The translations under genes and the position numbers were made by a program. From assembly GCF_003918875.1 (NCBI RefSeq), contig NW_025766692.1, positions 248,001 through 312,000 on the forward strand: a stretch of 64,000 nt of DNA. The letters run 5' to 3'. The stretch is from Haliotis rubra (taxonomy: Eukaryota). Shown here piece after piece: positions 27,742-58,325 of the stretch (positions within the stretch are counted from its first letter, which is position 1; each line of letters opens with the position of its first letter). Under the pieces are notes generated by a model that was given only the letters and a program-made list of their open reading frames with translations, was not told the origin of the DNA and did no database searches.

Positions 27742-27854
27742 TCAGCTGTAAACGCTGTCTCGATGGGTTTTTCATCACAGCACTCAAGGACAGCAGGCTA
27801 TCTTGAGAGACTGCCCACACGTCCGAATGCTCAGATTTGGCTAGTTGTCATCAT
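27742..27854 (-). ncRNA. Box C/D small (Cajal-body-type) RNA, mgU2-19/SCARNA9 5'-domain-like, copy 1
   Basis: Minus strand reads ATGATGA-caactagccaaat-CTGA-hairpin-GTGATGA-...-tttacag-CTGA. The guide UAGCCAAA pairs with U2 nt 16-23, placing G19 at the D'-5 position. Confidence 0.85.
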
Positions 27855-28325
27855 GGTGAGAGGAGAGGGAGGAGAGAAGGTGAGAAGAAAAAAATGAACG
27901 GACATAAGGAAGGGAAAGACTTCCGCCCGTATCCCCCCTTAAATTTCATTCTAGTCAAATCATATCACCTGAATACATGTTTCTCATCTGAAAAGTATGA
28001 GTTTTAACATGTTTCGTTAATTGTATCTGAACATGCTGAAAGGCATATTCAACTTAACTGCCACTCCAAGAAATTTTCCTCATCGTTAAAATTTACCCCA
28101 AGAGGTTTTTACATATACAGCTGCAAAAGAAATACAGGCATTATAAACCATAAAAATAGAGGTATGAGATTTCCCATTATGGGTTAGGGCTTAAATTTTT
28201 TTCAATTATGATTATGTGGGCTTTCATGATTCTACAGATGTCTACAAATTGTTAGTTAGGTCATATTACAGAACACGGGACATGTTCACAAAGACAAGAG
28301 AAAGGATGACATCATATCAGCTGTA

Positions 28326-28389
28326 CTGACTGACTGACTGAGTTTGGTTTTACGCCGCTTTTAGCAATATTCCCGCAATATCATGGCGG
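28326..28389 (-). mobile_element. 5'-truncated family A SINE tail inserted at the D box of C/D RNA copy 2
   Basis: 14-bp TSD TCATATCAGCTGTA at 28312-28325 and 28390-28403. Confidence 0.9.
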
Positions 28390-28394
28390 TCATA

Positions 28395-28507
28395 TCAGCT
28401 GTAAACGCTGTCTCGATGGGTTTTTCATCACAGCACTCAAGGACAGCAGGCTATCTTGAGAGACTGCCCACACGTCCGAATGCTCAGATTTGGCTAGTTG
28501 TCATCAT
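28395..28507 (-). ncRNA. Box C/D mgU2-19-like RNA, copy 2
   Basis: Core identical to copy 1; a SINE tail is inserted just 3' of the D box. Confidence 0.8.
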
Positions 28508-28793
28508 GGTGGATTAAAGAGTGAGAAGATACAAGGACATTAGTTTACACATATAGCTTTAGACATAAAGAAACATCAAAATCTCGCCAAGGTTCACTAA
28601 ATACAATGTTTATTCCTAATGCAGGATATTAACCAAAACAAACTTGCGTGATAACCTATATACCTATTGCGATATATTGAGAACGTAAGTGTTTGACATT
28701 GAATGTCACTAATTGTGCATGTCAATCCTATTTTCTACATCATAATCCCCTAAACATATATCCCGGTGTCAGGGGTTTTCGACGATGTAAGAC

Positions 28794-30345
28794 AACAAGA
28801 GTCATCAGAAGATGACATATCCCCCCGGCCCCCACATCTTTGAAAGAACAAATCATCTGACAGTTACTTAAAGTCCAGCTTGATTTTAGACTAAGTGCAA
28901 ATCGTTTCCATGGAAATCATGACAAAAATCTGCAAATAGCAAAAGGCACCACTTTGGGATCTGCCTCACATCGGCCAAGTTTTGCTGAAAGATATTAAGA
29001 AGTTTTCGCGTTGTGCTCCGGAAACAAAACCCATCCCTTCCTTTTTGAGACTAAGTTCGAATCATTTCCATGGAAACCGAGAAAATAATAAATCACAAAT
29101 ATCTGCAAATAGCAAAAGGCATCACTTAAACATCTGCCTCACATATCTGCCAAGTTTTGCTGAAAGATATAGAGAGGTTTTTGAGTTGTGCTCCGGAAAC
29201 GAAGCCCACCCCTCACTTTTGGGACTAAGTCCGAATCGTTTCCATGGAAACCGGAAAAATAAAAATGCCAAAAATCTGCAAATAGCAAAAGGCACCACTT
29301 AAGGTTCTGTTTGATATATCTACCAAGTCTTGTTGAAAAATATTGAACGGTTCTTGAGTTATGCTCCGGAAACGAAAGCAATCCTTACTTTTTGAGACTA
29401 AGTTCAAAATGTTTCCATGGAAACCGGGAAAAATAAAAATGCCAAAAATCGGCAAATAGCAAAAGGCACAACTTTAGGATCTGTTTCATACATCTACCAA
29501 GTTTTGTTGAAAAATATTGAACGGTTCTTGAGTTATGCTCTGGAAACGAAGCCCACCCCTCACTTTTGGGAATAAGTCCGAATCGTTTCCATGGAAACCG
29601 GGAAAAATAAAAATGCCAAAAATCTGCAAATAGCAAAAGGCACAACTTAAGGATCTGTTTGATATATCTACCAAGTTTTGTTGAAAAATATTGAATGGTT
29701 CTTGAGTTATGCTCCGGAAACGAAAGCAATCCTTACTTTTTGAGACTAAGTTCAAAATGTTTCCATGGAAACCGGGAAAAATAAAAATGCCAAAAATCGG
29801 CAAATAGCAAAAGGCACAACTTTAGGATCTGTTTCATACATCTACCAAGTTTTGTTGAAAAATATTGAACGGTTCTTGAGTTATGCTCCGGAAACGAAGC
29901 CCACCCCTCACTTTTGGGACTAAGTCCAAATCGTTTCCATGGAAACCGGGAAAAATAAAAATGCCAAAAATCTGTGAAATGCAAAAGGCACCACTTTAGG
30001 ATCTGTTTGATATATCTACCAAGTTTTGTTGAAAAATATTGAACGGTTCTTGAGTTATGCTCCGGAAACGAAGCCCACCCTTCTTTAAGACTAAGTCCAA
30101 AACGTTTCCATGGAAACCGAGAAAAATAAAAATGACAATTATCTGTAAATAGCAAAAGGCACCACCTTAGGTTATTTTTGACATATCTACCAATTTTGGT
30201 TAAAAAATATCGAACGGTCTTTGAGTTATGGTCCGGAAACAAAATGATTACGGACGGACGGACGGACGGACGGACGGACGGACGGACGGACAGACGTACG
30301 AGGCGACGACTATATCCCACCGCATTATATGCCGGTGGGATAAAA
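28794..30345. mobile_element. Helentron-associated (HINE/pearl-like) element with internal ~174-bp tandem array
   Basis: AACAAGAG start, about 8 internal units, (GGAC)n microsatellite, terminal hairpin TATCCCACCG...CGGTGGGATA. Relatives at about 5738-6230, 24760-25010 and 40771-41428. Confidence 0.8.
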
Positions 30346-31319
30346 ACGTAATTTTTATCTGTAATATCATTTAAAGTTTTTATTTTACTAACCTCGAGTG
30401 ATAAAGGATATATTCATCTATTTCACACAAAAATATCAAGTGTTTCCTACAAAAATAGCGTTGATGACATCGTATCAGCGAAACTGTTGCCGCTCGTAAC
30501 ATCTGGGTATTTTGTATGGGTTTTCGACGATGAGCCATACTTTTTGCTCCGCACTGCGAGTTGTGATCGCGTGGCTTCCTATTTATATATTGCCTGTCAC
30601 CAGCAGACGACTGATCTTACTGAATTTTCGCTCACGTACTCACCCGATATAGCGCAAGCAAGGCAATCGTCGAAATCACCAGAACGTCGAATTCAGCTCG
30701 TGTTGGGATATAACAGCTAATGTGATAACCGCAATCTCAAAATTAGGTTGCATAGTCATGGATTCTATTTTCTTTTTTTTATGCAATTTACAGTATTACA
30801 GTGTGCCATTTTGCCATTGAATGACAAAGGAAAACATTTGCTGTGAATGAAAGTATATGTAGATTTTAATTTAAACCATAAAGATAATTACAAAAAAAAC
30901 TTCATATATGTTATTTACCCAATATACCGGTTCTCAGAAAAAATATTGCAATACGTATCGTTTTAAAAGCGTCTTGCAATATACTGGTAATATACTGTGC
31001 AGTCCTACCTCTGATGACAAGCTGGGTTTACTGACCCATAATCTTAGGTTACCATTATGTTAGCCCTTGCATCGCACATTGTGTTGGACCATGTGTCACC
31101 CTTCGTGTCAGCCTTCCAGCAGGTTTTCTTGTTTAGTTTATACTTGAAACCTCAAAGGATGGGCCTGAAAAATACAATGTTCATACAGTGGAATTTAGAG
31201 GTAATCTTAGGCATAGAATGATAAAAACAAACGGGAGTTACAGGTGGAAATCTTTCCTATTTAGGATTGTGGTCCATTGTGTCAGCAAATATAGTCCTTA
31301 GAATGGCACACCTAGTAGA

Positions 31320-31790
31320 GACCGCATCGGAAGTACAATCACGCCGCCTGGTGGCGTGTTTACATAGAAACAGGTTTTGGTTTTCAGAATGGGTTCTGTG
31401 TTACGTTTATTATCACAACGTTAACACTATTGGAAAAAACATTCTTCAACACGTGAAGGTAGAAAATACATTCGATTCGGGTTTGGTGCCCACTGAAACC
31501 AGTTACAGTTGAATATTTGCCGCGATTTTGCAGTCGGACAGTGACAGAACGATGTGAACGTCCTTCATTGAGATATTCGTAAATGTATATACATAAACAT
31601 AACCATTGTCAGCATGTATATTTGATGGCAAACGCAAGTTGGATGTATAGACAAACGATTAAAACCATCCATGACTACATTTGAAGCGTTAAAGCGGCGC
31701 AAAGACACGATAAATAAAAGTTGAAAACTCCGCCCTCGTGGCCAAGATGGCCGACATGTTTATCTTAGATACGTGTTACTTGTCAGGTAT
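31320..31790. promoter_or_regulatory. CpG-enriched putative promoter
   Basis: ETS-like CGGAAGT (~31328); CTCF-like CGCCACCAGGCGGCG on the - strand (31342-31356); GC box and YY1-type CAAGATGGCCG (~31743) followed by a donor-like CAG|gtatt. Confidence 0.45.
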
Positions 31791-32331
31791 TTTAAGTTTA
31801 ATTTTTACTCTTTGCTGGTATTCTTGAGTTAAAACGCCAACTGGTAGTCATCTACAAACCGTGATGAGCTAACTGCACGATTTTGAAGCAACAATTCTTA
31901 TATTTATTCAGATTATTCTGAATATTCATCTCACAGAGACATTTGATTTTGATTTTGTGCAAATTCAGTTGAACACTGTGGAATGGATCGACAGGGAACA
32001 TTTCTTTTGGATGGCATATTGTTCTATGAACTAATGGTTTCAGGCAGAAACCTGGCATGCTTTTATGATTAGAAACAAGTTGCATGAAGCTGCAAGTGAA
32101 GTTGTGATGTTATGGCACCTGTGAGAAGTAATTAAGTTGAGACAATATAATTTTTTATTATTATCACATATACTGATGTTAACATCTGTGTCACTCTGCA
32201 TCAAATGTTACTCAAATGTTCCATTACTGCATCACATTTTCTGTTGCCTTTCAGTTCTTCCAAAACATGTATTTTCGACAATTCCTCACATTATTTATTA
32301 TTATTTATTTATTTTTGTTTTGTTTGTTTCC

Positions 32332-32572
32332 ACCGTGAAGATCCGGGTGAGTTAGAATTGATCTTCAGTCACCCATGAGTCGTATGAGTCGACTACCGGG
32401 ATCGGGCAGTCAGGCTTGCTGAGTTGGTTGACACATGTAATCGGTTCCAAATTGCTAAGACGGATGCTCATGCTGTTGATCACTGGATTGTCTGGTCCAG
32501 ACTCGGATTATTTACAGACCACCGCCATATAGCTGGAATATTGCTGGGTGCGGCATATAACTAAACTCACTC
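32332..32572 (+). mobile_element. V-domain SINE (RUDI-like), representative copy
   Basis: Family consensus CCCATGCTTGTCGTAAGAGGCGACTAA (V-SINE-like core) and the shared LINE-type tail. Other copies at about 3940-4142, 8887-9110, 12510-12737, 20310-20546, 22530-22750, 35432-35648, 40552-40770, 44018-44230, 44826-45030, 46338-46460 and 62356-62567. Confidence 0.8.
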
Positions 32573-33589
32573 TCCCATTTGTAAAGTTTCTTGTCTGATC
32601 AAGAAATCATTGAGACTGCCATTAATGTGAAAGAGATGGACAAAATATTTTTGTTCTTATTGCTGTTAATACTTCATCATTCATAGGGGTCTGTGACAAG
32701 AATAATATAATCAGTAAATTTTGTAAAGTAGGACAGATCTATATGAAGACAATCTGACCACGGGTATGATTTTTGGCTTTAATGCCCAGTTTAGTTATCA
32801 TTAGGGGTAAATTGCATATTTAAATGTTTCACCCTGCTGTCATTCATATGTCAATAATTAAATGTGCTTTTAATCAAAGTCTAATTTATATGTGTTGTCA
32901 AGTGTTGTGATCATTTGCAAATAATTTCTTTCTGTCTATGTTCAGTTGGGACAAGCACTTCCGGCGCATCAACAGAATAAAAAGGTTCTTAAAATGTCAA
33001 TAACAGCAGTTTCCAATTTTTTTGTCATTTGTTGAATTATGTGAAGAACAGAGTTATCTGCCCCTTGTTCTTTATTACTCTCTAATTAGGGTATGGGGAC
33101 TTGTTAAATTTTTTTCCATTTTTTATTTCATTTGTCTCACTCATCAGATTGGAAATAGTATCCAAGTTAGGTTTTATTTATACCTCTCAAAAATGGTTTG
33201 CGGTCTCTACACCTAGCCCACTGAGTAGGGTAAGTTGTGACAGTTCAAAGTGCAGGTTCATGAACTTCATCAATGATTTTCAAGAATTCAATGATTTATC
33301 TTAAACTTTTCTAATTTGATAATTTGCTCTATATTCGAGAGAAAAATCATTTATAGAAATATTACAATTCAACAGACTTGCATCTCAGTTCATAATGTTC
33401 ATCAAATAACATTTTTACAACTGACCCAAACTTACATCTTGAAAAGAAATTGGTCTTGGGGGACAAACTTGAAATCTAATATGTCACTAACAACAATTTC
33501 AAACGGAATCCAACATTCTAAAACGTACTTCTCACTTACTTCAACAGGAACATGTCACTTATATTTTTCCAGCCAACAACAAACTTGAA

Positions 33590-34720
33590 TAGTCACGTGC
33601 TTCGGCTCGTGCTCCAGTTGAAAAGCATGCAACCCGCGTTTGCAGTTGTGTGCTTGAATTATCTCCCTTGCATTCAGTCCCTATCTTTCACGGTCCCTTG
33701 ATAGAAGCGCAGTAGATCGTGTTGACCTCCTCTCGGGGCATTTACTGGTTTAGTTATGCCAGATGTGTAAACGGTTACATGTTTGGATGATGACTAAATG
33801 CCACACATGTCAAATAAAATAAATAAACAGTTACGCAAGCAATATATCAAGAATCATATATATCTTAGACACTGATTACTGATATCAGAAGACTAAAAAG
33901 AGGTTATCCTAATAAATAGCTATCCTTTTACGGGCACATCCAGGAGATTAGATGAATCATTTCCTCGACTAGTTGTCAATACTTGTTTCTGAATAGACTG
34001 GTTCAGGATTTTAGCGCTTGGGATAAGTTTTTATTCTCGAAATGGAGCTGCTCTAACATCCCTCAGCAAGCAGCAGTTATGGAAGAGTTATCGGTCTTGA
34101 TACATCCATTGTCGTAACAAATACGGCAAACCATTATATACCAAAATGCATGTTCATGTTGGAGAGCCGGAGAATCAAATACAGATTCTGGTTCTGGGAT
34201 GACTTTCATCTCGCTTTTTAACTTACTAAACTTACATATGCATTCAATATGTCGTGAAATACATGGAGACGCGACCTCTTTATGACAACCAGAATCCGCA
34301 TGCTAATGCCATCCTGAATTTTTGTGTTTTGGACATCGAGGAGACCTGGTCAAAATGAATATTCGCTGCGCCACTGTGAGTAATTTCGCACAGATATTTA
34401 CATATACGTTTGTGTGATCGTCACTTTGGAACAAACGATTGTCCATCCAAAGCGATGGTGCGAATATTTCTATCAGACACCCAGTATTCGCGCACAGGCA
34501 AAGCATTTGTTCTAGTTTTAGCTTCCGAAACAGGTTGACACAAACAACTTAATTAACATACTCCCGAAAACACCAGCCGGGAAATATAATGTTGTATGTA
34601 CAACGAGCGGTTTACGGTAATTAGCAGCCGAGAGCCGCGAGAAATCATTTATATTTGTAGTGAATTTTGTATCCTTGTATTGTTGGTTTCCGGTTTCTTT
34701 TAACCTGCTTCAGAAACATT
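33590..34720. promoter_or_regulatory. NAA10 promoter region (possibly bidirectional)
   Basis: CpG-rich stretch surrounding NAA10 coding exon 1. Confidence 0.55.
34355..34375 (+). CDS. NAA10: N-alpha-acetyltransferase 10 (NatA catalytic subunit), coding exon 1
   Basis: caaaATG AAT ATT CGC TGC GCC ACT|gtgagt = MNIRCAT, matching the conserved MNIRxA N-terminus. Confidence 0.92.
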
Positions 34721-34839
34721 CGCCCTAATCACACGAATTACTATAAAATAAAAGACAACGTTTTCTCTTGAACAAGCCATCAGTGACCCCGTTGTCACAA
34801 TGTCTGTGTGACCTAACACACCTATTTTCAATTGAGTAG

Positions 34840-35073
<234 letters not shown>

Positions 35074-35078
35074 TGATT

Positions 35079-35319
35079 CAGGGGTGGAAATAACTTTAAA
35101 ATTGGTAGTGTACTCCGGTACAGTGGCACATGTAAAATCACTTGCCCTGATAATTTTTCCACTATACCGGCCGTTTTCTTGTTGATTTTTTAAATAAACA
35201 ACATAATTAATATTGGAAAGTCAACTGGACACCGGTACAGTGTGATATACAAATTTGCTCGCCCGACAGACAAAAACCACTGGACTCGGGCGTTGGGCAA
35301 TGGGTTATTTCCACCCCTG
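35079..35319. mobile_element. MITE, hAT5-like, in NAA10 intron 2
   Basis: CAGGGGTGGAAATAAC...GTTATTTCCACCCCTG, TSD TGATT. Confidence 0.85.
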
Positions 35320-36195
35320 TGATTATATACATTTAAGATGCACATTAGTCAAGATGTGGTGATATGTAATCACTTTTGGGTTAGAATTAAAACACCATAC
35401 CAATTAAATAATATGCTAGAATGTTTTGTCCATTGTTTAACGCCACAGCCATCAATATTCCAGTCATGTGATGGCAGTCTGTAAACATGGTATTTAAGCA
35501 CCAGACAATCCAGTGATTGACGTCATGGGCATGAATCTACACATTTGAGTTACAATGGCATGCATCAACCTAATCAGCGAGCCTTATCTTGTTGGTTGCC
35601 TCTTACAACAAGCATGGATTGGCTGAAGATCAGTTCCAACCAAGATTTTCCGCTTGCCAGCTAGAATGGTTAAGGGGGTACTTATTTTGACCTGATAAAG
35701 GTTAAAATGTTGGGAGGTCCTTAAATTCAACATCAATAGTTTCAAACATAGACTAACGCTTAGTCTCTGAATATATATAATTTTGACAGTAGCAAATAAA
35801 CCCATTTGAATTGAATATAGGCACCCCAGTGAGATGAAGCTGAGGAAATATAGACTTTCTTCATTTAGGGCTTTAGAATTGCAGGGAGTGCCAGGCAGTA
35901 GGGAAAATAATGTGGGACAGGGACTTTGCGACAGTGTGTTGTAATCACTGCATTAATGTACACCACCTATTGCCTATTCAGCAACCTCTGTTCATCGCAA
36001 GAGGCTACTTAATGGATCAGATGGTGAGACTAGGGGCTTGGCTGTCTATCTATTCTATTTGTGAAATTACTGAAAAAGTGATCATTGATCTTTGTAGATG
36101 AAAGTTGTAGTTTCTGGTTGTACTTACATGAACAGCTTAATTTAAACATCGTAACTGGATATAATTTAGTTTTTAATTCCTGTTTTGTCTTCCAG

Positions 36196-36254
36196 TTGTC
36201 CTACGTAGCCGAAGATGAAAACGGAAAAGTTGTCGGATATGTCCTAGCAAAAAT
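36196..36254 (+). CDS. NAA10: NAA10 exon 3
   Basis: LSYVAEDENGKVVGYVLAK(M); ttccag| and |gtaagc. Confidence 0.97.
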
Positions 36255-36661
36255 GTAAGCATCTCCATTTCGCACTACAGTGTTGACAAGTGTGAGAGTC
36301 ACTGTCAGACTGTGTTCTTATCCTTTGGTCAGCATGTTCTAGTATATGGACTGATTAAGTTCCAAAATGCTCAACAATTTTACCTGAATTTGGTAATATA
36401 ATCATGGTAAAAGAACTTCACATCCAAAATCATATTAATGTGATGTTTTCACCAAAATAACTGCCATGGTAGTCTAAATACTCTACACGTTGTGTGCATG
36501 CAAATGTTCAGCATTGTCCAGTTGCTGTTACAGTTGTAGTTGCTGCTGCTGCTTTTGTTGTTGTTGCACTGAAAGTTAGTTATGGTAAAATTGGTCTTAA
36601 TAATAAACATGATATAATTGTTTGTGTATATCCTCAAGAGTTTAGATAGATCTCTTTCTAG

Positions 36662-36710
36662 GGAGGAGGATCCGGAGGACTCGGTGCCACACGGACACAT
36701 CACATCTCTG
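36662..36710 (+). CDS. NAA10: NAA10 exon 4
   Basis: EEDPEDSVPHGHITSL; ttctag| and |gtacgt. Confidence 0.96.
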
Positions 36711-37075
36711 GTACGTAACCATGGTAACACAGTCTTTGATCATGGTGGAATGATACATTTATTCTTTTCCTTCCTTCCTTCTGGATTCTCCTCATGTGCT
36801 AAATATTCAGACAGTAACCACACTAGACTAACATCTAGTCTCTGAAATGAACATACATTACAGAAAAATGGTTCCTAAATTATGTTCCTAAAATATAATA
36901 ACAAGGAACCGAGAGAATTTCTTCATTTTCAGGGACTTAACAAATCTGAGATATTTGATTTTCATTTCCATTACCAGCTCATCAATGTTACTATTTGTTT
37001 TTACCCCTAAATGCCTAAAAAGAAATAGATATCAACCACCTCTCCTTACCAGAGTAACAATGATAAAACTCAAGA

Positions 37076-37240
37076 CTGACTGACTGAGTTTGGTTTTACG
37101 CCGCTTTTAGCAATATTCCTGCAACATCACGGCGGGGGACACCAGAAATGGGCTTCACACATTGTACCCATGTGGGGATTCGAACCCGGTCTTCGGCGTG
37201 ACGAGACAACGCTTTAACCACTAGGCTACCCCACCGCCCT
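37076..37240 (-). mobile_element. Family A SINE, full length, with TSD
   Basis: Flanked by the direct repeat TAAAACTCAAGA. Confidence 0.9.
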
Positions 37241-37559
37241 TAAAACTCAAGAAAATAGAGATATGTCACAATGTTTTATATGAATCCTACATGTTGTCGG
37301 AGTGGGGACGGAGATTGGCAGGGGCCAGCGAGGGAGCAGGAGGTCTGGGCTCAGTCTGGGGTCTTGGGGAGTTCTGGGGAGCTTCCATGTGCTAATACTA
37401 AACGCTGTTGACAGCTAGAGATTAACTGATAATTACAAGCACTGTCGTCGCGTGAATTCATCAGATTTGTACAGACCCTAAAACTGTGGTTATCTTGACT
37501 TGCCACATATTCTAGAGTTTCACGGGCTGTATTGAATATATTTGTTTCAGGGTCTGCAC

Positions 37560-38005
37560 TAGTGGTGGTCCGATTAATTGAAATAATCGAAGATTGGTCG
37601 CAATGACAAAACGACCAAGCAATCGATCATGTTTTCTCATAATCGAACACAAACAATTTTGGACCACTTGTTTGCAATAACAATATTTTTCAAAAGGTTG
37701 ATTTTGTCTCGACATTGCATAAGCACTACAAGCTCGTTCCAAGTCATGATTAAGTTTATCTTAACAACTCCAGGAAATGTATGTTCCTAACACACTAGTC
37801 ATCCTTTAAAGATGTGAAATTTTCAAATGCATTTTGTGCAATTTGCGGAAAAACCCGAGAACTACATGTTTTTCTTTATTTTTTGTGCATTAACAAACAT
37901 AACCAGGAAAGTTTGATAAATGATGCTAACCAATTATTTTCGATGATTGATCGGTTGTAATGAACCAATCATCAATTATGAGATTTACACCAATTCCCAA
38001 CACTA
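37560..38005. mobile_element. Non-autonomous hAT-like element
   Basis: TAGTG...CACTA termini, perfect 8-bp TSD GTCTGCAC. Confidence 0.75.
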
Positions 38006-38219
38006 GTCTGCACTACAGACAACAGTTCGTTTGTTTTTTGGTGTTTTCGCGACACTCAGCAATATTCCAGCAATATGGCAGCAGCGTGCAAATAATCTAA
38101 TCTATACATTACAGCCAATAACCACACTCGTGCAACAAGAAGCATCTTGAGGCTTGTGGGGTTTGCTTTCCCAATAAGCACAAAAAGTATGACCTAACCT
38201 GTAGCTCTACCTGTTGTCA

Positions 38220-38800
38220 TGACAATGACAATACTTTATTACACGTGAGGGAATTCTTGTATAAAGTACAGAGCTCAAACATTGATAAATGATTAAATTA
38301 TTTTCATTTAATAAACAACACACATGCAACAAGCTAACAAGGTAAGACAACCACTAGGAATTGTTTAAAAGATTAATTCTGGCAGGAACAAAGGATATCA
38401 TGGCGCGATTGGATTTAAAACGGGGTAAATTATAACGGCGCCCAGAAGGCAGTAATTTATGCTCATAGTGGATGGGATAATCTGCATCAGATATAATCTT
38501 ACGGGCTGACTTGAGAACTCTTTCTTCATATATTTCATTTAGGTTAGCAAAAGATACACCTGCAATTTTACTGGCTAATAAAACTATTCTGGTGAGACAG
38601 TTTACGTTTTTAAGGGACAAGGTTCCATACCAGCATTGTACAGAAAAAGCCAGAACGCTCTGTATAAAGCACTGTTAGAAAAGACACATAATTGATTGAT
38701 TAACATGGAAAGATCTCAATTTGTGCAAGAAGTGTAACCTTTGTTGACACTTCTTGAATATAGCATCTGTGTTTACATTAAAATTCAGTTTGTTCAGTGT
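38220..38800 (-). mobile_element. 3' fragment of a Rex1/Babar-type LINE
   Basis: ORF end ...LLPSGRRYNLPRFKSNRAMISFVPARINLLN typical of the Rex1/Babar ORF2 C-terminus, followed by AATAAA and a (TTGTCA)n tail. Confidence 0.8.
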
Positions 38801-39949
38801 TCACATTCACTTGAAGATAATTATGTTCCCACCATGATACAAAGTCACTTATATCATCTCTATAATGCTGTTCATCCTCATTCTGTATGAGCCCTACCAG
38901 GGCTGAATCTCAAGAAGAAATATCTGACTACTGATCATATGGTGTTTATAGTAGATAATGCCATTCTTCATGTTGTGTTGTGTGACCATCCAAGGGAAGT
39001 AACTCTATCCACCTCCATTGTGTTACCCGTGGCTTTTCAACCATGTAATTCTGTCAGTGGTTTCTTCAGTGTCTTTTTATATGATTCAAAACACTTTTTG
39101 TACTCCGTGGCAGCTGAGGTTGTACAAAATCAGCTTGAACCCCCGAGAGGACGAATAAGTACTAGAATCTGTACTTTACTGAAAAAGATAAATCCCAAAT
39201 ATAACGTGTAATACAGCATTTAAAATACCCGCCTGCCCGACCGTCCGGAACGGTCTATTTACATCTCGGACGGTCAAATTTCAAAAGTTGCCTGTCCGGT
39301 GGTCTGGTAGATATTTTTACCCCTAAGAGTAAATATTTCATAATATCAGACAGGTTCTCTTGTCGTCAGTTTGAGGTGTTTAAGGTATTATGATAATTAT
39401 GTTAAACTACTTACGATTGGACAGTTCATGTTACGATAACCAATCACAATCATGTACTTTCAGTTTTACCTAAACTCGGTGCATTGCCTGTTAGTGCTAT
39501 GTAATTCATTGCTATGCCTACACACAGTGAATGGAGCTTGCGCGGGAGTTGGAAATGGCAGTCACAGTTTTTAATTGTTGAAAACAGGACAGGCAAGTTT
39601 GTATCCAGACTGGTAATTTTTTTAAGTTACCAGTCCGGCTGTCTGGCTTGGAATTTTGGGAGTTTTAAACACTGTGTAATAGCAAATGAATAAACTTGTC
39701 CGGGAACAAATAAACCACATTTGAGCATATAACAATATCTAAATAAGTGAGGCATATGTATAGATCTATAGGTAGATAGTTTGTGTGTATAGTAATAATA
39801 AGATTATTGGTATGAAGATAATAATAAGATTTTCCATAGACCCACATCTTGAACAGGTGTTATTCTTTCATCACCATGGTTACTAATGTTATTAGTGTGA
39901 AGAATGTTGTGAAATACACAATGCCACTTTAGAAAGTGGTCAAATGTAA

Positions 39950-40049
39950 CATATGTTATATTTGAGATTACACTTTCTCAGTAAAGTACAGATTCTAATA
40001 CTAGAATCTGTACTTTACTGAGAAAGTGTAATCCCAAATATAACATGTG
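39950..40049. repeat. Near-perfect 48-bp inverted repeat with 4-nt loop
   Basis: Arms 39950-39997 and 40002-40049 with two mismatches; a third partial arm copy at ~39161-39210. Confidence 0.9.
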
Positions 40050-40109
40050 AAAAATGTTATTGATGTGAAGAATGTTATTGATGTGAAGGATGTTATATTA
40101 TCCCTGTAG

Positions 40110-40271
<162 letters not shown>

Positions 40272-41950: not shown

Positions 41951-42010
41951 TTGTTTTGGTGTCTGTGTTGTGTGTAAAGTCCTACTCACTGGCCTACTTG
42001 TCTTTTGCAG

Positions 42011-42095
42011 GATCAGCGAGATCGAGCCCAAGTACTATGCTGATGGAGAAGATGCATATGCCATGAGACGAGATCTGTCAGAGTTTAGAGAACGG
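42011..42095 (+). CDS. NAA10: NAA10 exon 6
   Basis: [28 protein letters not shown]; ttttgcag| and |gtgagt. Confidence 0.97.
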
Positions 42096-45521: not shown

Positions 45522-46740
45522 ACCATCTTTTTGGATCCAACCTTCAGTGCAGATGGTGCACCAGCTATCCCAGGGAGATGGGATGGGAAACACAGCAACA
45601 GGAGAACCAGTGACCCAATGTGACAAGCCAAGTCATACAGACATACCCCTATGATCAGACACAAAAGGAATCTTTATTTATCACCGATTTATTCACAAAT
45701 CTGTCGCCTTTGAAAGTTGACTAAACCGTGACATTCTCCAACTTCACACTCCTCTTGTCTAGTGAAGCGATCACTGCATGTACCTGCAAGAAGCTAACAC
45801 TCTCTCCTTGTATTTACTCAGTTTTAATGGGATTCATAGTTCACATTCCTTTCTGTCGTTTCATCTTCTCTTTAACAGGTCGTCGATGTATTTGAAATTA
45901 CTCACTGCAAAAAGACTGTTGGTTCAATATTGAGATTGTTAAATACAGCCATCACTGCCTAGTTTGTATCTACCTCTGCTCTGCTTGGTTACATACTGCT
46001 CAAATCTTTCTAAGGATCACCATTTTAGGTGTGCAAATTGTATGTGACTGTTGAAATAGCCCTAGACAGTATTGTATGAAGACATTTTAATGAATAAATG
46101 TCTTGTCATGTGCCACACAATGCCTACAAACGTGTAAACAATATTCAGTCAGACCATCCATCAAAATGAGATCATCTGACCAACCTTGAAAGGTTAAATA
46201 ATCATGAAACGATGTCCATGGTAAAAATAAGTTTTCCGTAGCACTTATGTGATCCACATGATGCAATCACAGCCTAGTTTTCTCACTCCGATTAAGCGTC
46301 AGGATGGTTGTCGCATTACTATTTTTCTCTTCAGGAAGAGTGAGTGAGTTAAGTTTTACGCCACACTCAGCAATATTCCAGCTGTATGGGGGCGGTTTGT
46401 AAAGAATCGAATCTGGACCAGACAATCCAGTGATCAACAGCATGAGAATCGAACTTCGCAATCTGCCCCTAGATGTGAATTTAGTCTGGCTTCATACCAC
46501 TTCTCTCAGTATTTTATTGATAAACCTAAATGTGGGGGAACAAGCTTCAAGTGATGCAGGCATCCTATAATTTACCACTTGGGTTATGGGTCCATGTCTA
46601 ACCAGTGTCATGAAGTATGTGAGTGAGTGAATTGGGTTTAAGCCACTTTGAACAGGGTTTGAAAATGTACTCAGTTTGAGAGATATTGATCTAATTATTA
46701 GTATGAGTGTCTGTTATTAGTATAAAATAAAATCAAGATT

Positions 46741-47066
46741 AGGCCAGACCAATTTTATTTCTTGTTTTACGGATTTTTGTCCTCAGAAAACCTAAAGGCA
46801 AGAGAGAAAAAAATAGAAAATAAAAATCACCGGTCAAAAATATTTTCCGTTTGAATACGTAAGTATTTTATTTTTGGCAATTTATGAAGTGCATATGGGG
46901 CAAACAACAATCAAAAACATATTTTTTGTAAGTTTACATTTTTTTCCAATAAAAACATGAGGATTTTTTTTTTTGAGCGGGAAAATTAATTTTTATTTTT
47001 TTTCTTATTCTTGAACAAATACGACAGGTGGATCTGTAAAACAAGAAATATAATTGGTCTCACCTT
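46741..47066. mobile_element. MITE, same family as 18302-18637
   Basis: Same TIRs; interior is the reverse complement. Confidence 0.75.
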
Positions 47067-48254
47067 AAAAGGAAACTACAGGAAATTAACTTATCTGTAT
47101 GAGAAACATTCTTTTAAGCATTAGAATTTTAATTTAAATAATTTGAAACCTGTTCGTACATATATTTCAGTTATAGCTGGGTACAATGTGTGAAGCCCAT
47201 TTCTGGTGTCCCCCGCCGTGATGTTCCTGGAATATTGCTAAAAGTGGCGTAAAACCAAAACTCAGCTCAGTCAGTCAGTTCAGTTATAGCACAATGCTTC
47301 AAAGTGTCAATGAAGGTCTTAAGAAGTATTCCTTTGGTTAAACACATATCATAATGACAATTGTATTCCATTAAAATTATGTAGCTCTTCATCCAGTTTG
47401 TGATATATTTTGGCTTAATATATTTAAAATATGAGAGATGATATATAAAAGCCAAATAATTCTTAATATCAAATCAAATTTTGCCAAATTTCAAGTGTCA
47501 GATGTACATGTATACAGGTTTTAAAACTCGAATTGAAAAGAACATTTTCTCTGTTTCTTTTTCTTCCGTATCATTTAAAATACAGTACGTGTATAATCAG
47601 TGAATGACCTTCATCTTCGCAGTGAAATGTCATCTGGAAAAAAATATAAATAGATCCTGTGACTCACGATGAAGACAAAAATAACAAAACTGTGACCTGG
47701 TTTATCTCTAGATACATCATGTTACTAAGGAGTCAGTGATGCGTGCTGTCAACTTCAGTGACCTTGAATAGTCTTTCTCATATCTCTTGCACAGGACCAT
47801 GAATGGAGGGATCATCTGCATACACAAGGTTGGACACCATAAAGACTGCTCCATCATCCCTAATATCGAGAACCAACAGGTTTTGTAGAAGGGAACTGAA
47901 TCTCTAGGCCGGGATTTCAGGTGAATATCTTCATCACTAGGCTACTCCGTCACATCAAGAGGGGAAGGAATGCACGGATGATATCACAATCAGCGAGCAG
48001 AGCCCAACTTCCTGTGTATGCTTTTGCCACCAGAATGTAGAGAGATACATAGTCTGGTCTCAGGAATCTTATCACTTATACCATTATGTTGCGACACTGT
48101 TCATCCTGAGCCCTAAATTTGATGGCCACTCTGAAAGTGCAAGAGGTCATTACACAAAATTTAAAAATCAGAAATTCATTGGGGTTTCACAATGCCACTT
48201 CCACAATTCCAACAATTTCTGCATTACTGAGGTATTTTGGACACCAGAATCTCA

Positions 48255-50410
48255 ACAATGGAGCCACCTGAGTTTACCATGGACCCCAGAAACTTGACAA
48301 TGGAACCACCTGAGTTTACCATTTACCCCTAGAAACTTGACAATGGAACCACCTGAATTTACCATGGACCCCCAGGGGTTAAAAAATCCCATCGCCCGAT
48401 GCCCGGGACAAGTCAGTTTTCATTTCGGGCAATCAAATAATGGTATCTTACTTGTCTGTGGGCTACTAGATAATTTCCACTTATGGTTTCAAACTGCAAA
48501 TAAACTTGGATTTCATTTCATATCTGCTCAAAAATGTAGCTATTAAATTTTGCAATGATAATAAAGTAGAGTTATCTTTCTTTGCTATAAATACCATGTT
48601 GATTTCTTCTTTCATAATTACATCATCATAATTATGTCATAAAATCAGGGCAAGTGGAAAATTAGTCAGGACAAGTTACTTTCTTAAAGTCACTTGCCCT
48701 GTGGCAAGTGGCTTTTTAAAAAAAAATTGAACCCCTGACCCCAGAAACTTGACAATAGAACCACCTGAGTTTACCATTTACCCCAGAAATTTGACAATGG
48801 AGCCACCTGAGTTTACCATTTACCCCAGTAACACAACAATGGAACCACCTGAGTTTACCATTTACCCCAGTAACACAACAATGGAACCACCTGAGTTTAC
48901 CATTTACCCCAGTAACACAACAATGGAACCACCTGAGTTTACCAAGGACCCCAGTAACACAACAATGGAACCACCTGAGTTTACCATGGACCCCAGTAAC
49001 ACAACAATGGAACCACCTGAGTTTACCATGGACCCCAGTAACACAACAATGGAACCACCTGAGTTTACCATGGACCCCAGTAACACAACAATGGAACCAC
49101 CTGAGTTTACCATGGACCCCAGTAACACAACAATGGAACCACCTGAGTTTACCAAGGACCCCAGTAACACAACAATGGAACCACCTGAGTTCACCATGGA
49201 CCCCAGTAACACAACAATGGAACCACCTGAGTTTACCATTTACCCCAGTAACACAACAATGGAACCACCTGAGTTTACCAAGGACCCCAGTAACACAACA
49301 ATGGAACCACCTGAGTTTACCAAGGACCCCAGTAACACAACAATGGAACCACCTGAGTTTACCATGGACCCCAGTAACACAACAATGGAACCACCTGAGT
49401 TTACCATGGACCCCAGTAACACAACAATGGAACCACCTGAGTTTACCATGGACCCCAGTAACAGTAAACAATGGAACCACCTGAGTTTACCAAGGACCCC
49501 AGTAACACAACAATGGAACCACCTGAGTTTACCATGGACCCCAGTAACACAACAATGGAACCACCTGAGTTTACCATTTACCCCAGTAACACAACAATGG
49601 AACCACCTGAGTTTACCATGGACCCCAGTAACTCGACAATGGAACCACCTGAGTTTACCATTTACCCCAGTAACTTGACAATGGAGCCACCTGAGTTTAC
49701 CAAGGACCCCAGTAACTCAACAATGGAACCACCTGAGTTTACCATGGACCCCAGTAACTCAACAATGGAACCACCTGAGTTTACCATGGACCCCAGTAAC
49801 TCAACAATGGAACCACCTGAGTTTACCATGGACCCCAGTAACTTGACAATGGAACCACCTGAGTTTACCATGGACCCCAGTAACTCAACAATGGAACCAC
49901 CTGAGTTTACCATGGACCCCAGTAACTCAACAATGGAACCACCTGAGTTTACCATGGACCCCAGTAACACAACAATGGAACCACCTGAGTTTACCATGGA
50001 CCCCAGTAACACAACAATGGAACCACCTGAGTTTACCATGGACCCCAGTAACTGAGTTTCGACAATGGAACCACCTGAGTTTACCAAGGACCCCAGTAAC
50101 ACAACAATGGAACCACCTGAGTTTACCATGGACCCCAGTAACACAACAATGGAACCACCTGAGTTTACCATGGACCCCAGTAACACAACAATGGAACCAC
50201 CTGAGTTTACCATGGACCCCAGTAACTCAACAATGGAACCACCTGAGTTTACCATTTACCCCAGTAACACAACAATGGAACCACCTGAGTTTACCATGGA
50301 CCCCAGTAACACAACAATGGAACCACCTGAGTTTACCATGGACCCCAGTAACACAACAATGGAACCACCTGAGTTTACCATGGACCCCAGTAACTCAACA
50401 ATGGAACCCA
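48255..50410. repeat. 42-bp minisatellite (about 40 units)
   Basis: Unit ACAATGGAACCACCTGAGTTTACCATGGACCCCAGTAACACA. Confidence 0.95.
48373..48737. mobile_element. MITE, hAT5-like, inserted in the 42-bp minisatellite
   Basis: CAGGGGTT...AACCCCTG, TSD ACCCC. Confidence 0.85.
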
Positions 50411-51558
50411 TCAGTGCGAACTGGGAACCTTTGCAACCTGTAAACCAATTGAGCGGTGGGGTAGCCCAGAAGATAAAGCATTCGTCATCATGCAAAGGCC
50501 AGATTCGATTCTATATAGGACATTTGTGAAACCGATTTCTGATGTCCCTCGCTGATATTGCTAAAAGCAGCGAAAAACCCGGCTCACTGTAAACCTTGAG
50601 CTTTATACTTGAAAAATAACAACAAACAACTGATTACATACTGTCAAATGTTTATGCAGTGGCTATCATTTTGAGTTTACTGTTTAAAGGACCACACTGG
50701 TGTATTCGGTACCATCTGTATCCTACACAGACAAGACACATACACAGTGTACAAGCATGCTACTTAAGATCTGTACACAACTCAAACAGCAGGCCGAACA
50801 AGCAGCCACTAGATACGTAACACAATTTCATTTTTCCCTAAGTAAAAACCCTTATACATCTTTAATTTTTATTATGCTACAACAAAAGTGAATTTCATTT
50901 TCATTAAGCTAGACAATGAGCACTTCCTAACAATAAACATTGCATAAATATCACAAGCTTGCTCAACAAGATTTAACACAGGCAGCATGGAACTTGCATA
51001 ATTCATTTTCATCGTTCGGTAACAATTTGTCTACTTCTAAATTTTGCTTTATTAAAATGTAGAAAATACAAGACAACAAAAACAAATAATGATCTCATAA
51101 CAAGACACCAAATATGGTACCAGGGGTCCAGTCTTAGTCTTGACTAGTTAAATGTTTGTGTCGAGGCTTTATTGCAGAGAGATTTAATTGAATATCATTC
51201 AGATTGACTATGGAAACTTCTGTCTATAACAATCCACAAATACATAAAATCATCCATCTACCGGTAAGTTCCATTATATAATTTAAATTTGACCAACATA
51301 AATTAAGATGACTCATTTTAAGATGTTGTCTAATTAAATATACATATATGTTTTGTACATGAATGTGAGTAAATCGAGAGTTAAATAAAATGGATTCCAC
51401 CACCTTTACTTATCACAGTGTTTTGATTCGAGGCTTTGTGTTACACAAGCATATCAGATCATAAGCCAAACACTGAGCATACAATATATCTTTACCAACT
51501 GCTAAATAACTTTACACAATAAATTCATCAGCCACAAAACTATAAACAATGGAATTAT

Positions 51559-52422
51559 TTAGGGAAGAACACCTGTTTTCCCCAAATCATTAAGAGCAAA
51601 TTCAACGTCAATGCTATCCATTTCATAATGAACATCAAAACACACAAAACTTGCTAATGGCAGTTTGCAATGGAATATCATTTCTTGGTAGCATGTTGTC
51701 CTTAATGGACAAAGGATTATTTCTGTGTGATCTGGCATCATTGCGTTGATCAGAGACAAACTTTTGCCATCAAACCGTCCAAGAGCCGATCATGTCAGAT
51801 TGACCATCAGCTCTGATTGAAAGTACATGGTAAAACTGGGTGTAATCTCCGTAAGTGTTATCGCTTTGGTTGGTGTGGAGCAGTCACTTAGTAGTGCGTC
51901 TCTGTCACGTGATTCATGTGGAAGTCTCGCGTTCGGAAAGTCTTTTCTCTTGAGACAGAAATGGAATTTTCTCTTGTCCAAGTTTATGTGGGAACATATC
52001 CTTATGAAGGATACCCGTTGCACAGCCATCGTCCCTGTACTCCATCATCAACAGTGAATTTGTTCCACTGGAACATTTCAAATACAGGGATAAGGGCAAG
52101 TGCATTTCTTGAAGTGACATTCATATCCTGACACCCCTTAATATCAAGGATGGCACAACCCAATCCCACAATGAGATCAGTCTATGTTCCATTTCAGGTT
52201 GAAAGGACAGTTCCACACGAAAAGTCACAGGTATATGAGGATGATGTCAACACCCCTGTATGTGGTGAATGGCAGGGCTCTGTCCCAGCAGGGGACAAGT
52301 CCATATGAGCATACAGGGGGTACAGGCTGTCTACATCTTGTGATCTTCCAGCATTTTGTCCTCCATGAGACTAGTGGTCATGACCTCGCTGCTGCAGCTG
52401 CCAGGGCTACACGACATCAGCT
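51559..52422 (-). pseudogene. Possible decayed coding exon of unknown protein
   Basis: GC-richer block behind a strong minus-strand acceptor (tttctttgtttttctcag|). Frame 52029-51559 is open except for one TGA; the upstream frame has scattered stops. Confidence 0.3.
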
Positions 52423-54344
52423 CTGAGAAAAACAAAGAAAAAAATCAGTAAATCAATAAAATAACAACAATATCATTATTGGATTATTTCTAAATACATC
52501 AGACCACTTGTTATACAAATACAGCAAAGCATCCAAGCACAGAACAATATTAATATTTATGATTAATATGAAATATACTAGTAACCACAATAACAGTCAT
52601 AGCATCCTCTTTTCTATTTAATTCTTGTTGCTTTTAAAAATTTAACCAATAGGAATATATAAGTTCACAATACATTGTTCAAAGGTAAACACATACTCTT
52701 CTCTATATAAAAACAACTACAATTTTAATAAATACAGTACTGTTGTTGAAGTAAAAACTAACTAAATGCAGTCTCTAAAAGCAGTGCAAGACAAAATGTT
52801 CCACATGGATGTCTGTCTTCTGTGAGTGCCTATCACACAGGTGTCAAGTGCCTATCACACGGTAGTGAGGCCCATGTACATCTGCAGCGTAACATCATGT
52901 AGAGAACGTCCCACTCAATCTGGTCTAAGACCCTGGTACACAAGGAACCAAACTACCACCTGACTCTACTTCCTTACAACTGTCCAATCACCTGTCAATT
53001 ACCTTGAACAAATACCAGCCCAAATAGCTGACTATACACCTGAAAGAGACCTGAAACACCATCTCTTCATTTATACTACACAAATGATGTTAATGAATAT
53101 TACTACAGAAAGCATGACAAATACCTGATTTATACACCTGGAAAGAAGTTAAACATCAACCCTTCTACATCTTCATAGATACTACTCAAAATGCTACAGA
53201 AAACCTGATATTACTGCAGTGAATCTGTCTGGGCATGAAACATTAACCATGATCACATGAGTGAGTGAGTGAGTGTGGTTTTACGCCGCTTTTAGCAATA
53301 TTCCACCAATATCACTGCAGGGGACACCCGAAATAGGCTGCACACATTGTACCCATGTGGGGAATCGAACCCGTGTCTTCAGTGTGACGAATGGACACTT
53401 TAACCATAAGGTGATCCCATCGCTCCCATGGTCACATGACAGAATTGCACGTTCTTTAACTTCTTTGGAGCAGAATATTATGGACTTATTTATTTTAGAT
53501 ATCTACATCTAATCATTTTGACAAATGGCCAAGATGTCAAAGATAAAGACTGGTTCAAGACGTATAGATTTTTACAAGTACTATTTCACATAATACACTG
53601 AAGCAGAGAAATTACTATTACTACTGACATGGAATAGCCACAAAAAATGTTGGGAATAGTCACAAAAAATGTTGAAAGTGAACAGTTAAGAGTTTATATT
53701 TCAGTGTGAATGTCACATTATAGAAAAAAAAAAATGTATGACATAAAATTTGAAAAAGGTCACATTCAAACAAAAATTAAACTTTTAATATAACTTTACC
53801 AAAAAGCAGTGTTACACTTTTGTCCAGGTATATATCAATGTTTTCACTTGAGAAAAGTGGTCCTCTGATTAGCCTCTGTATTGAACACTGTACCAGTAGC
53901 TATGGGATTTATGTCTCTTGTTTGAAAAGCTCATTGACAGATATGTCAGTTTATTCACCAAGAGGTTCAATCTGTACACAATTCATATCATGCATCCTGT
54001 GCAAGGGAGGTAACCAGTAGGTGCATGATGGGTATACCACAAAATAGGTCAATAATTCACTTAATCACATGCCACTACACAGTACATGCACAGACAAGAC
54101 AATTGGGTCCACACCCAACACTTCGAATATCAAAGGAACACCATGAGCTGATGGTGAAGACTTGCTTGTAAGTCTATATTTTCATTCACATTTGAACATG
54201 GACTTCAAGAAGAGCAGATTAAATTGCAGAAAACACAAAGTTGTAAATTTAACTTGTGATACACCACTCATGTCAAAAAAATTCTTTAAATTCATGACTT
54301 ATCAACATTACAATGTTTGAGATAAACATGTTTGTGGGGGTTTT

Positions 54345-54812
54345 CATCCTCGATAATCTCCAGGTTATACGGTCCGATAAAATCTCCACTATACCCTGGA
54401 TGCATCTATGGCTCGGCCCGATGATGTTATTACCTCCCTTGGCTGGCTTTTCATCCAATCAGGTGTCTACGCTGGGAAGTTGAGCGTACCAATCACAACT
54501 CACTTTCAATTCTTTTATCTAACCGATTAAACTTGACAACACAATTGCTGCAGAGGTACTCTGAAAGAGGTAGAAGGGGTTCTTGCATATATTTGTTGAA
54601 GGTTTCAGACCTGTCAATTTGTCTGTATGAATTTCCCCAAAATCTCGCACTGCGAACAAACCTTCGCAGCTGCGACCGCTCTCTTTGGCCACTGGTTGTA
54701 ACGCGGCGGCAGCTGACTGGCCACTGTGAGAATGCGGCGCCAGCAAAGGGAGGTAACAAATCTCCACTAGCACCATGGATGCATCTATGGCTCAGCCCAA
54801 TTATCGAGGATG
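54345..54812. mobile_element. Non-autonomous P-like element
   Basis: CATCCTCGATAAT...ATTATCGAGGATG TIRs, 7-bp TSD GGGTTTT, internal direct and inverted subterminal repeats. Confidence 0.75.
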
Positions 54813-57800
54813 GGGTTTTTATGAGAACTAAAACCTGAATCCATGCGTTTTAAACCTCTAAAAGTAAACAAGGGAAAGTGTTATGTCTAACTTACAACCA
54901 CCTGACCCTGACCCAAATAATTTGGAACATGTATCAACAATTTTATTTCAAACATACTTCATGTACACGTCAAGAAATAGATGTAAAATATTTATTGGCA
55001 TACATACACTGAAAAAACCCGAGAATCTTAAAAGCACTGAGATTTATCAGCCACTCTTTAGAAGGGTGGTCCACCACCTACTTGACTATAGATATGAAGA
55101 TTGCAAAGTTGATCCATAAACCAAACAGTTATTTATTTGTCAATAAACAGGAAAACTAACATGTTACAGTATCAGTGAAACATGGAAATGTAAGATCCCG
55201 GACACACTTTCAGATCCCATATGTGTGAGTTAACCTGCCAGGAGAACAGTAGGATGATATAAATGGAGGTATAACATGAGATTGACACTGCTTGTGGCTC
55301 GAGTTGCAACAGTGGAAGACCTTGAGGACTGAGGCCAGACAAGCCACAGGCCAGACTCCTGCTTCTTAAAGGTGAAATGATAAACCCTTAAAATACAACA
55401 GTGGGCGAGTATGGAATTATGCCGCTTTTAGCAATATTCCAGCAATATCACAGCAGGGGACACCAGAAATGGGCTTCACACATTGTACCCATGTGGGAAA
55501 TTGTATCTGGGTCTTCGGCGTGACGAGCGAATGCTTTAACCATTAGGCTACCCAACCACCCCTTTAAGATAAAATAAACATATGAAGTTTCATGTGAACA
55601 CTTGAGACAGCTGTTAAACCAGGAATACCTTCAAGTTTAGTTTTAAGTAATAAAATATATAAATAAATAAATGGTGATTGAGCCAAACAGTATTTTTGGG
55701 GTGAGCATTTTTCTGCTTTGCAGGTAAGTGGCACTTATCACCTCGTCTTTATACATGTTAAAGATCCTGTCCTGCCCTGGGCTCACGACAGGCATCAGGT
55801 ACGAGATATTGGCTGTGGGGAATGTGAGTGGCAGTGACCTTTCCCCGGTCTCCCTAACAGGCAGTAACACCACTCTCAACAGCATTTCACAGCATGTCAG
55901 CGAAATGTGGGAGGAAAACATCCAATGGGCCGCAGGTTGCAGATAATTACCACATTCAGGCAGGGTCCTCAAACATGTCTGAGGCACTGAAAGAATCTGG
56001 ACCAATCTCAGATTCAAACTCCAACCTTAGGAGCCTGGCACTGAACCTTACACTGCATGACCAACCAATGTGACCATATAGTGAATCATGAGCTTGTCAT
56101 TTTAGTTTTTAGCAATATCAGGTGACACCAGAAATGGGCTTCACACACTGTACCCATGTGGGGAATCGAACCCACCCACGTCTTTGGTGCGCTTTACTGC
56201 ACTTTATATATAGGAGTGAATGAGTTGGACTTTACGCCGCTTTAAGCAATAATCCAGCAATATCACAGTGGGGAACACCAGAAATGGGCTTCACACATTG
56301 TACCCATGTGGGGAATTGAGCCTGGGTCTTCGGCGTGACGAGCGAATGCTTTAACCACAAGGCTACCCCACCGCCACTTACACTGCATGAATCCCCTGCA
56401 GTTAGTACGCCTGACAACATCAACACAGAACATTGTTAATGACAAAAGGACAACCTCCTCACAAATTCCGCTCTGCCTATCTTTCATACAGACATATTTA
56501 TAATACCTGGCACCAACTGACACTGAAGGAAAGCATTACCTGTGACCCAAATTCACTCTCGCTATTTATGCTGGACAAATTTATTCATTGACACAGTTAA
56601 CTTCAAATATGCTTTTACGAGAGTTTCAACACACCCTGCCATGTCTACCACAAAGTAGGAGAACCAGTATATGAAGATTCTTAGGATAACAGAATTTACT
56701 GCCTGATGAGTAAGAGCAATTTCACGTGGCCTGTTCAGTTGGGAAAACGTCATACTTTAGAATTAGTAGTTAGGGTGGTACCATTAAGTAATATTTAGTT
56801 CTTGAGTATGTACATAACATTTTGAATAGTATGACTAAAAATTATGTTAGGATAATATGATGTACAAATAAATATTTAATTGTTTGGATGGCAGCAAGTG
56901 TAAAAAAATTGTCAGGATAACATTAAATTGCAAAAATTCTCATTATGTAGTTGAGTTTGATGGATAGTAGCATCAGTGTCATAGGTTAGATACTTGGATA
57001 TCTTTTATTGATCTCACAACATTATTAAGATAATGCTTGTAACAATAATATTTCTTGAACATATTAAATATTTATCTGAAATATTTTGCACTAACATTAG
57101 ACAAGACTCTTCAATGTTGTGATTTCATGAAACTACATCATGGTTGTAAAAAGTTGAACACTTCCTTTGAAAAACAGGCATAGTTACCTACTTTATCTTG
57201 CGATAGAGCAAATTATATCTGTACTCATTATATTACACACCTAGTACATTGTCTTGTTATGAAGGATTTTTAGAAGCCCCAATTCAGTGCTTGACACGAA
57301 CATCATTGTTTACACCAGCTATTTCCTTGTCCCTGACCTACTAATTAGAGATCGGTCCAGGGTCGTGACATGAGACACGATCTCCTCCCACGATTCCTTT
57401 AACTTCCTGTGCATGCATCATGGGACACAGATTCAAGCCGAGTTGAGAATTTAAACATACTATTTGCCTTGAACCTGTATTGTGTTGTTCAAATCAATGG
57501 AATTTTTTTTCTGAATCATTGAGTTGAAGAACTCACAACAACAGGAAAATACCAATAGCATAATTCAATTGCGTCTTCACTCTCTAGTGAGTGAGTTTGG
57601 TTTTATGCCTCTCTTAGCTATATTCCAGCAATATCTATTTTTTCTTCTTTCTTTTTTTAAAATTTATTATACCTGGAAAAAGTACAACATGTTTCAATTT
57701 ATCTCATTCTAGGTGTTTACATGACCAGGATTTTTACATAAGTACATGTATATCATTCACAATCATCCATACACACACTCACACCCACTAGAAGCTTTCA

Positions 57801-58212
57801 GTATTCATGTTGGATATTTTAAAAAACTGCAAAAAAATATTCAGGAAAGTTTTGGGGACATTCCAGCAATATCGTAGCGGAAGACACCAGAATCTTTACT
57901 CCCCAATTCTAATTACGATTCTTACTTGGTATCAGTAGTGGCTCAAATTTAAATTGGTTTTGGATGTTTGTCGGTTGTGAGTTCTAAGCAAGCAACCTTG
58001 TAGAAAGTCGAGCCTGGTTCATATCATGAGCATGGTTTCCTTGTGATGAATTCTAACCTGGAATCCAACCGGATGTAAACATTCGTAAAAATCATTTTTA
58101 TGCGTAGTAATTCTATTATTATTGTTATGAGTATCTCAATATCTTTAGCCACTTGAGGGTCACTCCATCCAACAAACAAGGAACAGGAGTAAAGAGAAAG
58201 GATGACATTATA

Positions 58213-58325
58213 TCAGCTGTAAACGCTGTCTCGATGGGTTTTTCATCACAGCACTCAAGGACAGCAGGCTATCTAGACAGACTGCCCACACGTCCGAATG
58301 CTCAGATTTGGCTAGTTGTCATCAT
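58213..58325 (-). ncRNA. Box C/D mgU2-19-like RNA, copy 3
   Basis: Identical to copy 1 except two substitutions, both in the 4-nt apical loop (CTCA to GTCT). Confidence 0.85.

Follow-up and report, generated by a model that had tools for sequence, protein, structure and literature searches.

Three copies of a box C/D guide RNA gene in Haliotis rubra, probably homologous to the mgU2-19 domain of SCARNA9

Three copies of one small RNA gene

The window analyzed here is a 64,000-nucleotide (nt) stretch of the Haliotis rubra genome (RefSeq assembly GCF_003918875.1, contig NW_025766692.1, positions 248,001 to 312,000 of the forward strand), which carries on its minus strand three near-identical copies of a 113-nt element with the hallmarks of a box C/D guide RNA. 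These are very probably three gene copies of a single guide RNA of about 113–125 nt, homologous to the 5′ domain (mgU2-19) of SCARNA9. The RNA is predicted to direct 2′-O-methylation of U2 small nuclear RNA (snRNA) at G19 (Gm19). As a box C/D guide RNA, the element is probably real and expressed.

Read on the minus strand, the core occupies 27742–27854 (copy A), 28395–28507 (copy B) and 58213–58325 (copy C), exactly where a preliminary description of this DNA had placed it. A 37-nt probe taken from the 5′ end of the core likewise gives three matches in the window and none in shuffled sequence. Copies A and B are identical at 113 of 113 positions, and copy C shares 111 of 113. Both of its differences lie in a hairpin tetraloop, where the first and fourth positions change (58278 and 58275), converting CUCA to GUCU. 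The preliminary description had thus been right that the distant copy differs only in the 4-nt loop, although two loop differences alone are too few to demonstrate the structural constraint it invoked.

A whole-genome DNA search of the 1.38-Gb assembly counted three copies, all within the window, and a pattern search for box C, the guide and box D′ across the same assembly returned only these three. With three copies in 1.38 Gb, the core is therefore not a dispersed repeat. The hundreds of diverged genomic copies that had been named beforehand as a contrary outcome are not there.

Architecture of the RNA

From 5′ to 3′, the RNA consists of box C, a 13-nt antisense element, box D′, a 51-nt hairpin, one unpaired U, box C′, a 26-nt spacer and box D, in agreement with the C, D′, C′, D order of the box C/D class. 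In copy A, all on the minus strand, box C (AUGAUGA) lies at 27848–27854 and aligns with box C of both the Rfam snoU2_19 family and human mgU2-19. It is followed by the antisense element at 27835–27847 and by box D′ (CUGA) at 27831–27834, which was read in the sequence and likewise aligns with snoU2_19 and human mgU2-19. The hairpin spans 27780–27830, and box C′ (GUGAUGA, 27772–27778), the spacer (27746–27771) and box D (CUGA, 27742–27745) complete the core, both of these boxes being read from the sequence. Boxes C, of the RUGAUGA class and near the 5′ end, and D, near the 3′ end, are present in 3/3 copies, and all four canonical boxes named in the preliminary description were located in every copy.

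The D′–C′ interval is closed by the hairpin, which has 21 pairs, five of them G·U, and the tetraloop CUCA. Its predicted folding energy is −24 kcal/mol, with z scores of −3.6 (copies A and B) and −3.9 (copy C), and both loop variants adopt the same structure. The G·U-containing hairpin reported earlier is thus a stable one. When the flanks are included, the minimum-energy fold adds a 7-bp (base pair) stem between GAUGACA (27846–27852) and UGUCAUC of the conserved 3′ flank, and copies B and C fold likewise. UGUCAUC lies 6 nt after box D, and this is the only predicted flank pairing; it uses box C itself. Such a stem would mask box C.

Homology to mgU2-19 and the predicted U2 target

A 50-nt northern probe for the mgU2-19 domain of human scaRNA9 is given in the methods of a published study (PMC5612246). 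When the reverse complement of this probe is aligned to the mollusc core, 39 of 47 columns are identical, and none of 5000 shuffles aligned as well, in keeping with the likeness to the 5′ domain of SCARNA9 noted in the preliminary description. The alignment spans box C through box D′ and about 23 nt further. It includes an uninterrupted run of 20 identical nucleotides that takes in the guide, D′ and four bases beyond, together with a shared CAGUCU some 20 nt further on. Because the alignment extends beyond the guide, the 5′ half is likely to be homologous to mgU2-19, as opposed to merely having converged on the same U2 site. This apparent homology with human mgU2-19 is the strongest evidence for the identity of the RNA.

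No Rfam family matched the element at gathering thresholds. When thresholds were relaxed across 4227 Rfam families, snoU2_19 (RF00494) gave the top bit score on the element, and its consensus has exactly the same guide and D′ box. The covariance alignment covers only the 5′ part, with the D box of the model placed on the C′ region of the element. A scan of metagenomes for homologues gave one match, which reads as a chance match within apparently bacterial coding sequence.

The genes for U2 in this genome were found with the Rfam U2 model, and six loci share an identical first 60 nt. The first 29 nt are the same as in vertebrate U2. Against this U2, the 3′ part of the D′ antisense element, UAGCCAAA, forms eight Watson–Crick pairs with nt 16–23 (U16–A23). 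The fifth guide position from D′ faces G19, so the fifth-nucleotide rule, applied to the U2 of the same genome, selects the nucleotide proposed in the preliminary description. Taken alone, complementarity to U2 is weak evidence of a target. The U1, U2 and U5 genes of this genome form long tandem arrays; on contig C324, a single array consists of alternating U4 and U6 genes.

By analogy with the box C/D guides, the class whose workings we adopt as the basis for the proposed mechanism, boxes C/D and C′/D′ would bind the core proteins Snu13, Nop56/58 and fibrillarin, while the hairpin would close the long interval between D′ and C′. The element upstream of D′ would form the 8-bp duplex with U2 nt 16–23, placing G19 opposite the fifth guide position for 2′-O-methylation by fibrillarin. 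Ribonucleoprotein assembly, G19 methylation, localization and an intronic origin are steps that we only infer.

The second antisense element

The 26-nt spacer before box D is a second, orphan antisense element. It is invariant in 3/3 copies, like the rest of the core, and in a contig from another organism it is intact except, among the differences listed, for one A lost from the A-run after C′. Such conservation, together with a U2 duplex of only 8 bp, would be expected if the RNA were a functional box C/D RNA whose main task is not U2 G19, the spacer guiding or chaperoning another RNA and the U2 match being a relic.

The screens for such a partner argue otherwise. No canonical target of at least 7 contiguous pairs was found in the eight snRNAs of the same genome (U1, U2, U4, U5, U6, U12, U4atac and U6atac). 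One whole ribosomal DNA (rDNA) unit, taken through the 5.8S locus, contained no canonical target either, its best matches having 9 pairs including 2–3 wobbles. Perfect 14-nt targets occurred genome-wide at chance level, none of them within an Rfam family. The part of the RNA conserved with human is, moreover, the D′ guide and its surroundings. We thus regard a principal function away from U2 as unlikely.

The element is also complementary to U2 nt 3–12 over 10 bp interrupted by a bulge, with p of about 0.02 when only U2 nt 1–15 are considered and 0.75 for the whole of U2. An accessory pairing with the 5′ end of U2 is therefore no more than a lead. In human mgU2-19, AGAAGU located 5 nt after D′ could pair with U2 nt 4–9; this match is differently placed and within the range of chance.

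Flanking sequence and origin of the copies

Shared sequence continues beyond the core for about 18 nt upstream (copies A and C) and for roughly 20 nt downstream in all three copies. This common 3′ flank, at 27722–27741 on the minus strand in copy A, contains the UGUCAUC that is complementary to GAUGACA in the box C region. Past these 18–20 nt the flanks of copy C cannot be aligned with those of A and B, whereas downstream of the core A can still be aligned with B over about 150 nt, with roughly 66% of positions identical. That A and B match at every position of the core but at only about 66% in the flanks implies that either purifying selection or gene conversion has acted on the element and not beyond it.

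Immediately downstream of copy B, a 64-nt, 5′-truncated tail of a short interspersed element (SINE; family D8) with a TCAG-repeat end has been inserted 5 nt after box D (28326–28389, minus strand). It is bounded by a 14-nt target-site duplication (28390–28403 and 28312–28325), as a result of which box D is present twice there.

One or more of the copies could be non-functional duplicates, either small nucleolar RNA (snoRNA) retrocopies or products of gene conversion, in which case the amplification would carry no functional meaning. The sharp end of the similarity between C and A/B, about 20 nt on either side of the core, fits such an origin, as does the SINE fragment that cuts copy B off from the shared 3′ flank. 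On the other hand, none of the three copies has lost a box, either antisense element or the hairpin; the cores themselves are surrounded by neither a poly(A) tail nor a target-site duplication, and the genome holds no better master copy elsewhere. We consider this explanation improbable. That the element is a chance box C/D-like motif within a low-copy repeat or transposon fragment is scarcely credible: SINEs and tandem repeats do fill the window, and chance does produce short C/D motifs and 8-bp matches to U2, but a copy number of three, not hundreds, the highly significant human alignment, the stable hairpin and a coverage in small sequencing runs that is confined to the element all contradict it.

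Genomic setting

All three copies have the same orientation, and no open reading frames (ORFs) flank them. A nearby TSGA13-like gene, at 9.4–16.6 kb of the window, looks plus-stranded. Human SCARNA9 lies in CEP295, and a gene with an ALMS motif was therefore considered as host; it was ruled out, being located on another contig.

The regions upstream of the three copies share a pyrimidine tract only, with no common snRNA promoter element visible. Eight snRNA genes of the same genome (loci L004, L006, L007, L011, L014, L015, L031 and L033) carry an A-rich ATAGA or ATCAGA element within about 10–25 nt of the coding end, which is likely the 3′ box. No such element follows any of the three copies. 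The absence of a snRNA-type 3′ box, with nothing but a pyrimidine tract upstream, therefore makes an independent gene of the snRNA type unlikely. Our best guess, held with moderate confidence, is an intronic origin within a minus-strand, possibly non-coding, host.

The surrounding DNA is rich in repeats. Members of a tRNA-derived SINE family whose tails consist of TCAG- or CTCA-type repeats occur at 27402–27579, 28326–28389, 62729–62916 and at least 8 more places, and the family is very abundant in every sequencing run examined. The sole Rfam match at gathering threshold in the window is a tRNA (62835–62893, minus strand) that forms the head of one SINE. Between copies A and B, the segment 27910–28057 is highly repeated in the DNA-like run X7; its plus strand gives a sub-threshold SNORD111 match (23 bits against 46) that is most likely due to chance. 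Long tandem arrays occupy 48238–50500 (period 42 nt), 28967–30260 (174 nt) and 15705–16340 (39–40 nt), the last of these inside plus-strand ORFs of the TSGA13-like region.

Occurrence in other organisms

Word-index searches of sequencing runs found the element in several other organisms, and reads were then assembled over it. In run X25 (125 million letters), a contig of depth 79 starts about 13 nt ahead of box C and ends with the final base of box D; in X10, a run of 32 million letters, most of the element is covered by a contig of depth 2.3. In both cases the element is covered and the unique flanks are not. We read these data as RNA because, as DNA, runs of this size would be too small to cover a locus present three times in so large a genome, which suggests a discrete transcript in the X25 and X10 organisms. 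The DNA-like run X7, from another organism, shows differences of about 5–10% in nearby unique DNA, while in the core the copy-C loop variant is the only change among the differences listed.

Discussion

Our analysis places the element among box C/D guide RNAs, with the human alignment as its mainstay. Several observations weigh against the assignment to a U2 G19 guide. Boxes C and D are not bordered by a 5′/3′ terminal stem, nor can one form, because the flanks CACC and UAUA cannot pair; Darzacq and Kiss reportedly described, in 2000, some intronic box C/D RNAs without one. The guide duplex is short, at 8 bp, and this window alone contains, by chance, 4 unrelated CUGA-anchored 8-bp matches to U2 nt 1–70. 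In the comparison with the Rfam snoU2_19 and SCARNA9 models that had been suggested at the outset, snoU2_19 did come out highest, but at 17.8 bits against a threshold of 39 (E 2.3). A whole-genome search with RF00494 returned nothing, a result that is uninformative since 57 of about 360,000 candidates were scored. For the transcript, the RNA label of X25 and X10 is a tool's guess, their contigs show neither ends nor strand, and no RNA run from the organism of the window was among those searched; the X7 differences come from an incomplete table. Finally, the literature searched contains no record of Gm19 in mollusc U2.

A broader scenario can be outlined, which we regard as doubtful. The mollusc RNA would be the ancestral, single-domain U2-G19 guide, and the tandem SCARNA9 would have arisen later by fusion. 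The second element would clamp U2 nt 3–12 through the bulged 10-bp pairing, stabilizing an unusually short 8-bp guide duplex without itself directing methylation, and the pairing between the 3′ flank and box C would serve as an assembly or processing checkpoint.

If the homology to mgU2-19 holds, a U2 Gm19 guide would have existed before protostomes and deuterostomes diverged, and its 5′ half would have stayed nearly the same ever since. A single-domain version also offers a natural point of reference for tracing how the vertebrate SCARNA9 tandem came about, and U2 G19 is predicted to be 2′-O-methylated in molluscs. The accepted view of how this class works is unchanged and no new mechanism is proposed; the value of the finding is evolutionary. 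The gene is of an ordinary kind, and a U2-G19 guide appears not to have been described before in molluscs, the literature searched containing no report of one outside vertebrates.

Comparison with known guide RNAs

The Drosophila small RNAs specific to Cajal bodies (scaRNAs) of the box C/D type are, like the mollusc RNA, single-domain snRNA guides in a protostome. They carry a cgaGUUAnUg motif that binds WDR79 (PMC4041459, citing Tycowski 2009), and a survey of fly scaRNAs mentions no G19 guide (PMC3884663). In the mollusc cores and 40 nt on each side, no GUUAnUG is present.

Box C/D scaRNAs encoded in vertebrate introns have the layout of the mollusc RNA, with C, guide, D′, a long hairpin, C′, guide and D, and share an RNA polymerase II snRNA as target. 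Their hairpin, however, ends in a GU-rich wobble stem of 20–40 nt that binds WDR79. A vertebrate-type terminal stem of G·U/U·G wobbles is absent from the mollusc hairpin, which has one GUGUG run, five scattered G·U pairs and a terminal helix of GUCU with AGAU. With both known box C/D Cajal-body signals (criteria of PMC4041459) lacking, the scaRNA label given in the preliminary description is justified by the predicted U2 target but not by a localization signal, and the processed human mgU2-19 monomer is itself nucleolar (PMC4041459). The RNA could thus offer a simple test case for the route by which a guide reaches its snRNA substrate outside flies and vertebrates.

The closest relative is vertebrate SCARNA9, whose 5′ domain shows the same succession of box C, antisense element and D′, the same predicted U2 G19 target and the same 8-bp duplex. 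SCARNA9, which is intron-encoded, has two C/D domains in tandem with a GU-rich spacer of 175 nt between them (PMC4041459). No match to mgU2-30 (RF00493) was found within about 1 kb of any mollusc copy, nor any U2-A30 guide in the window, in line with the earlier view that the RNA is not fused to an mgU2-30 domain. When the genome was screened with a narrow pattern for a free-standing U2-A30/A31 guide, five matches were obtained, at control level and with the best in SINE-like sequence, which is not evidence of absence.

In contrast to SCARNA9, the mollusc RNA is single-domain, with a 51-nt hairpin, a clear C′ box, a second antisense element of 26 nt and three gene copies. The claim that it has an architecture of its own is borne out by the single domain, the extra hairpin and the orphan second guide, although a D′–C′ hairpin is usual in the box C/D scaRNAs encoded in vertebrate introns and makes it less unusual than first proposed. 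The RNA belongs to a well-understood class in a variant layout.

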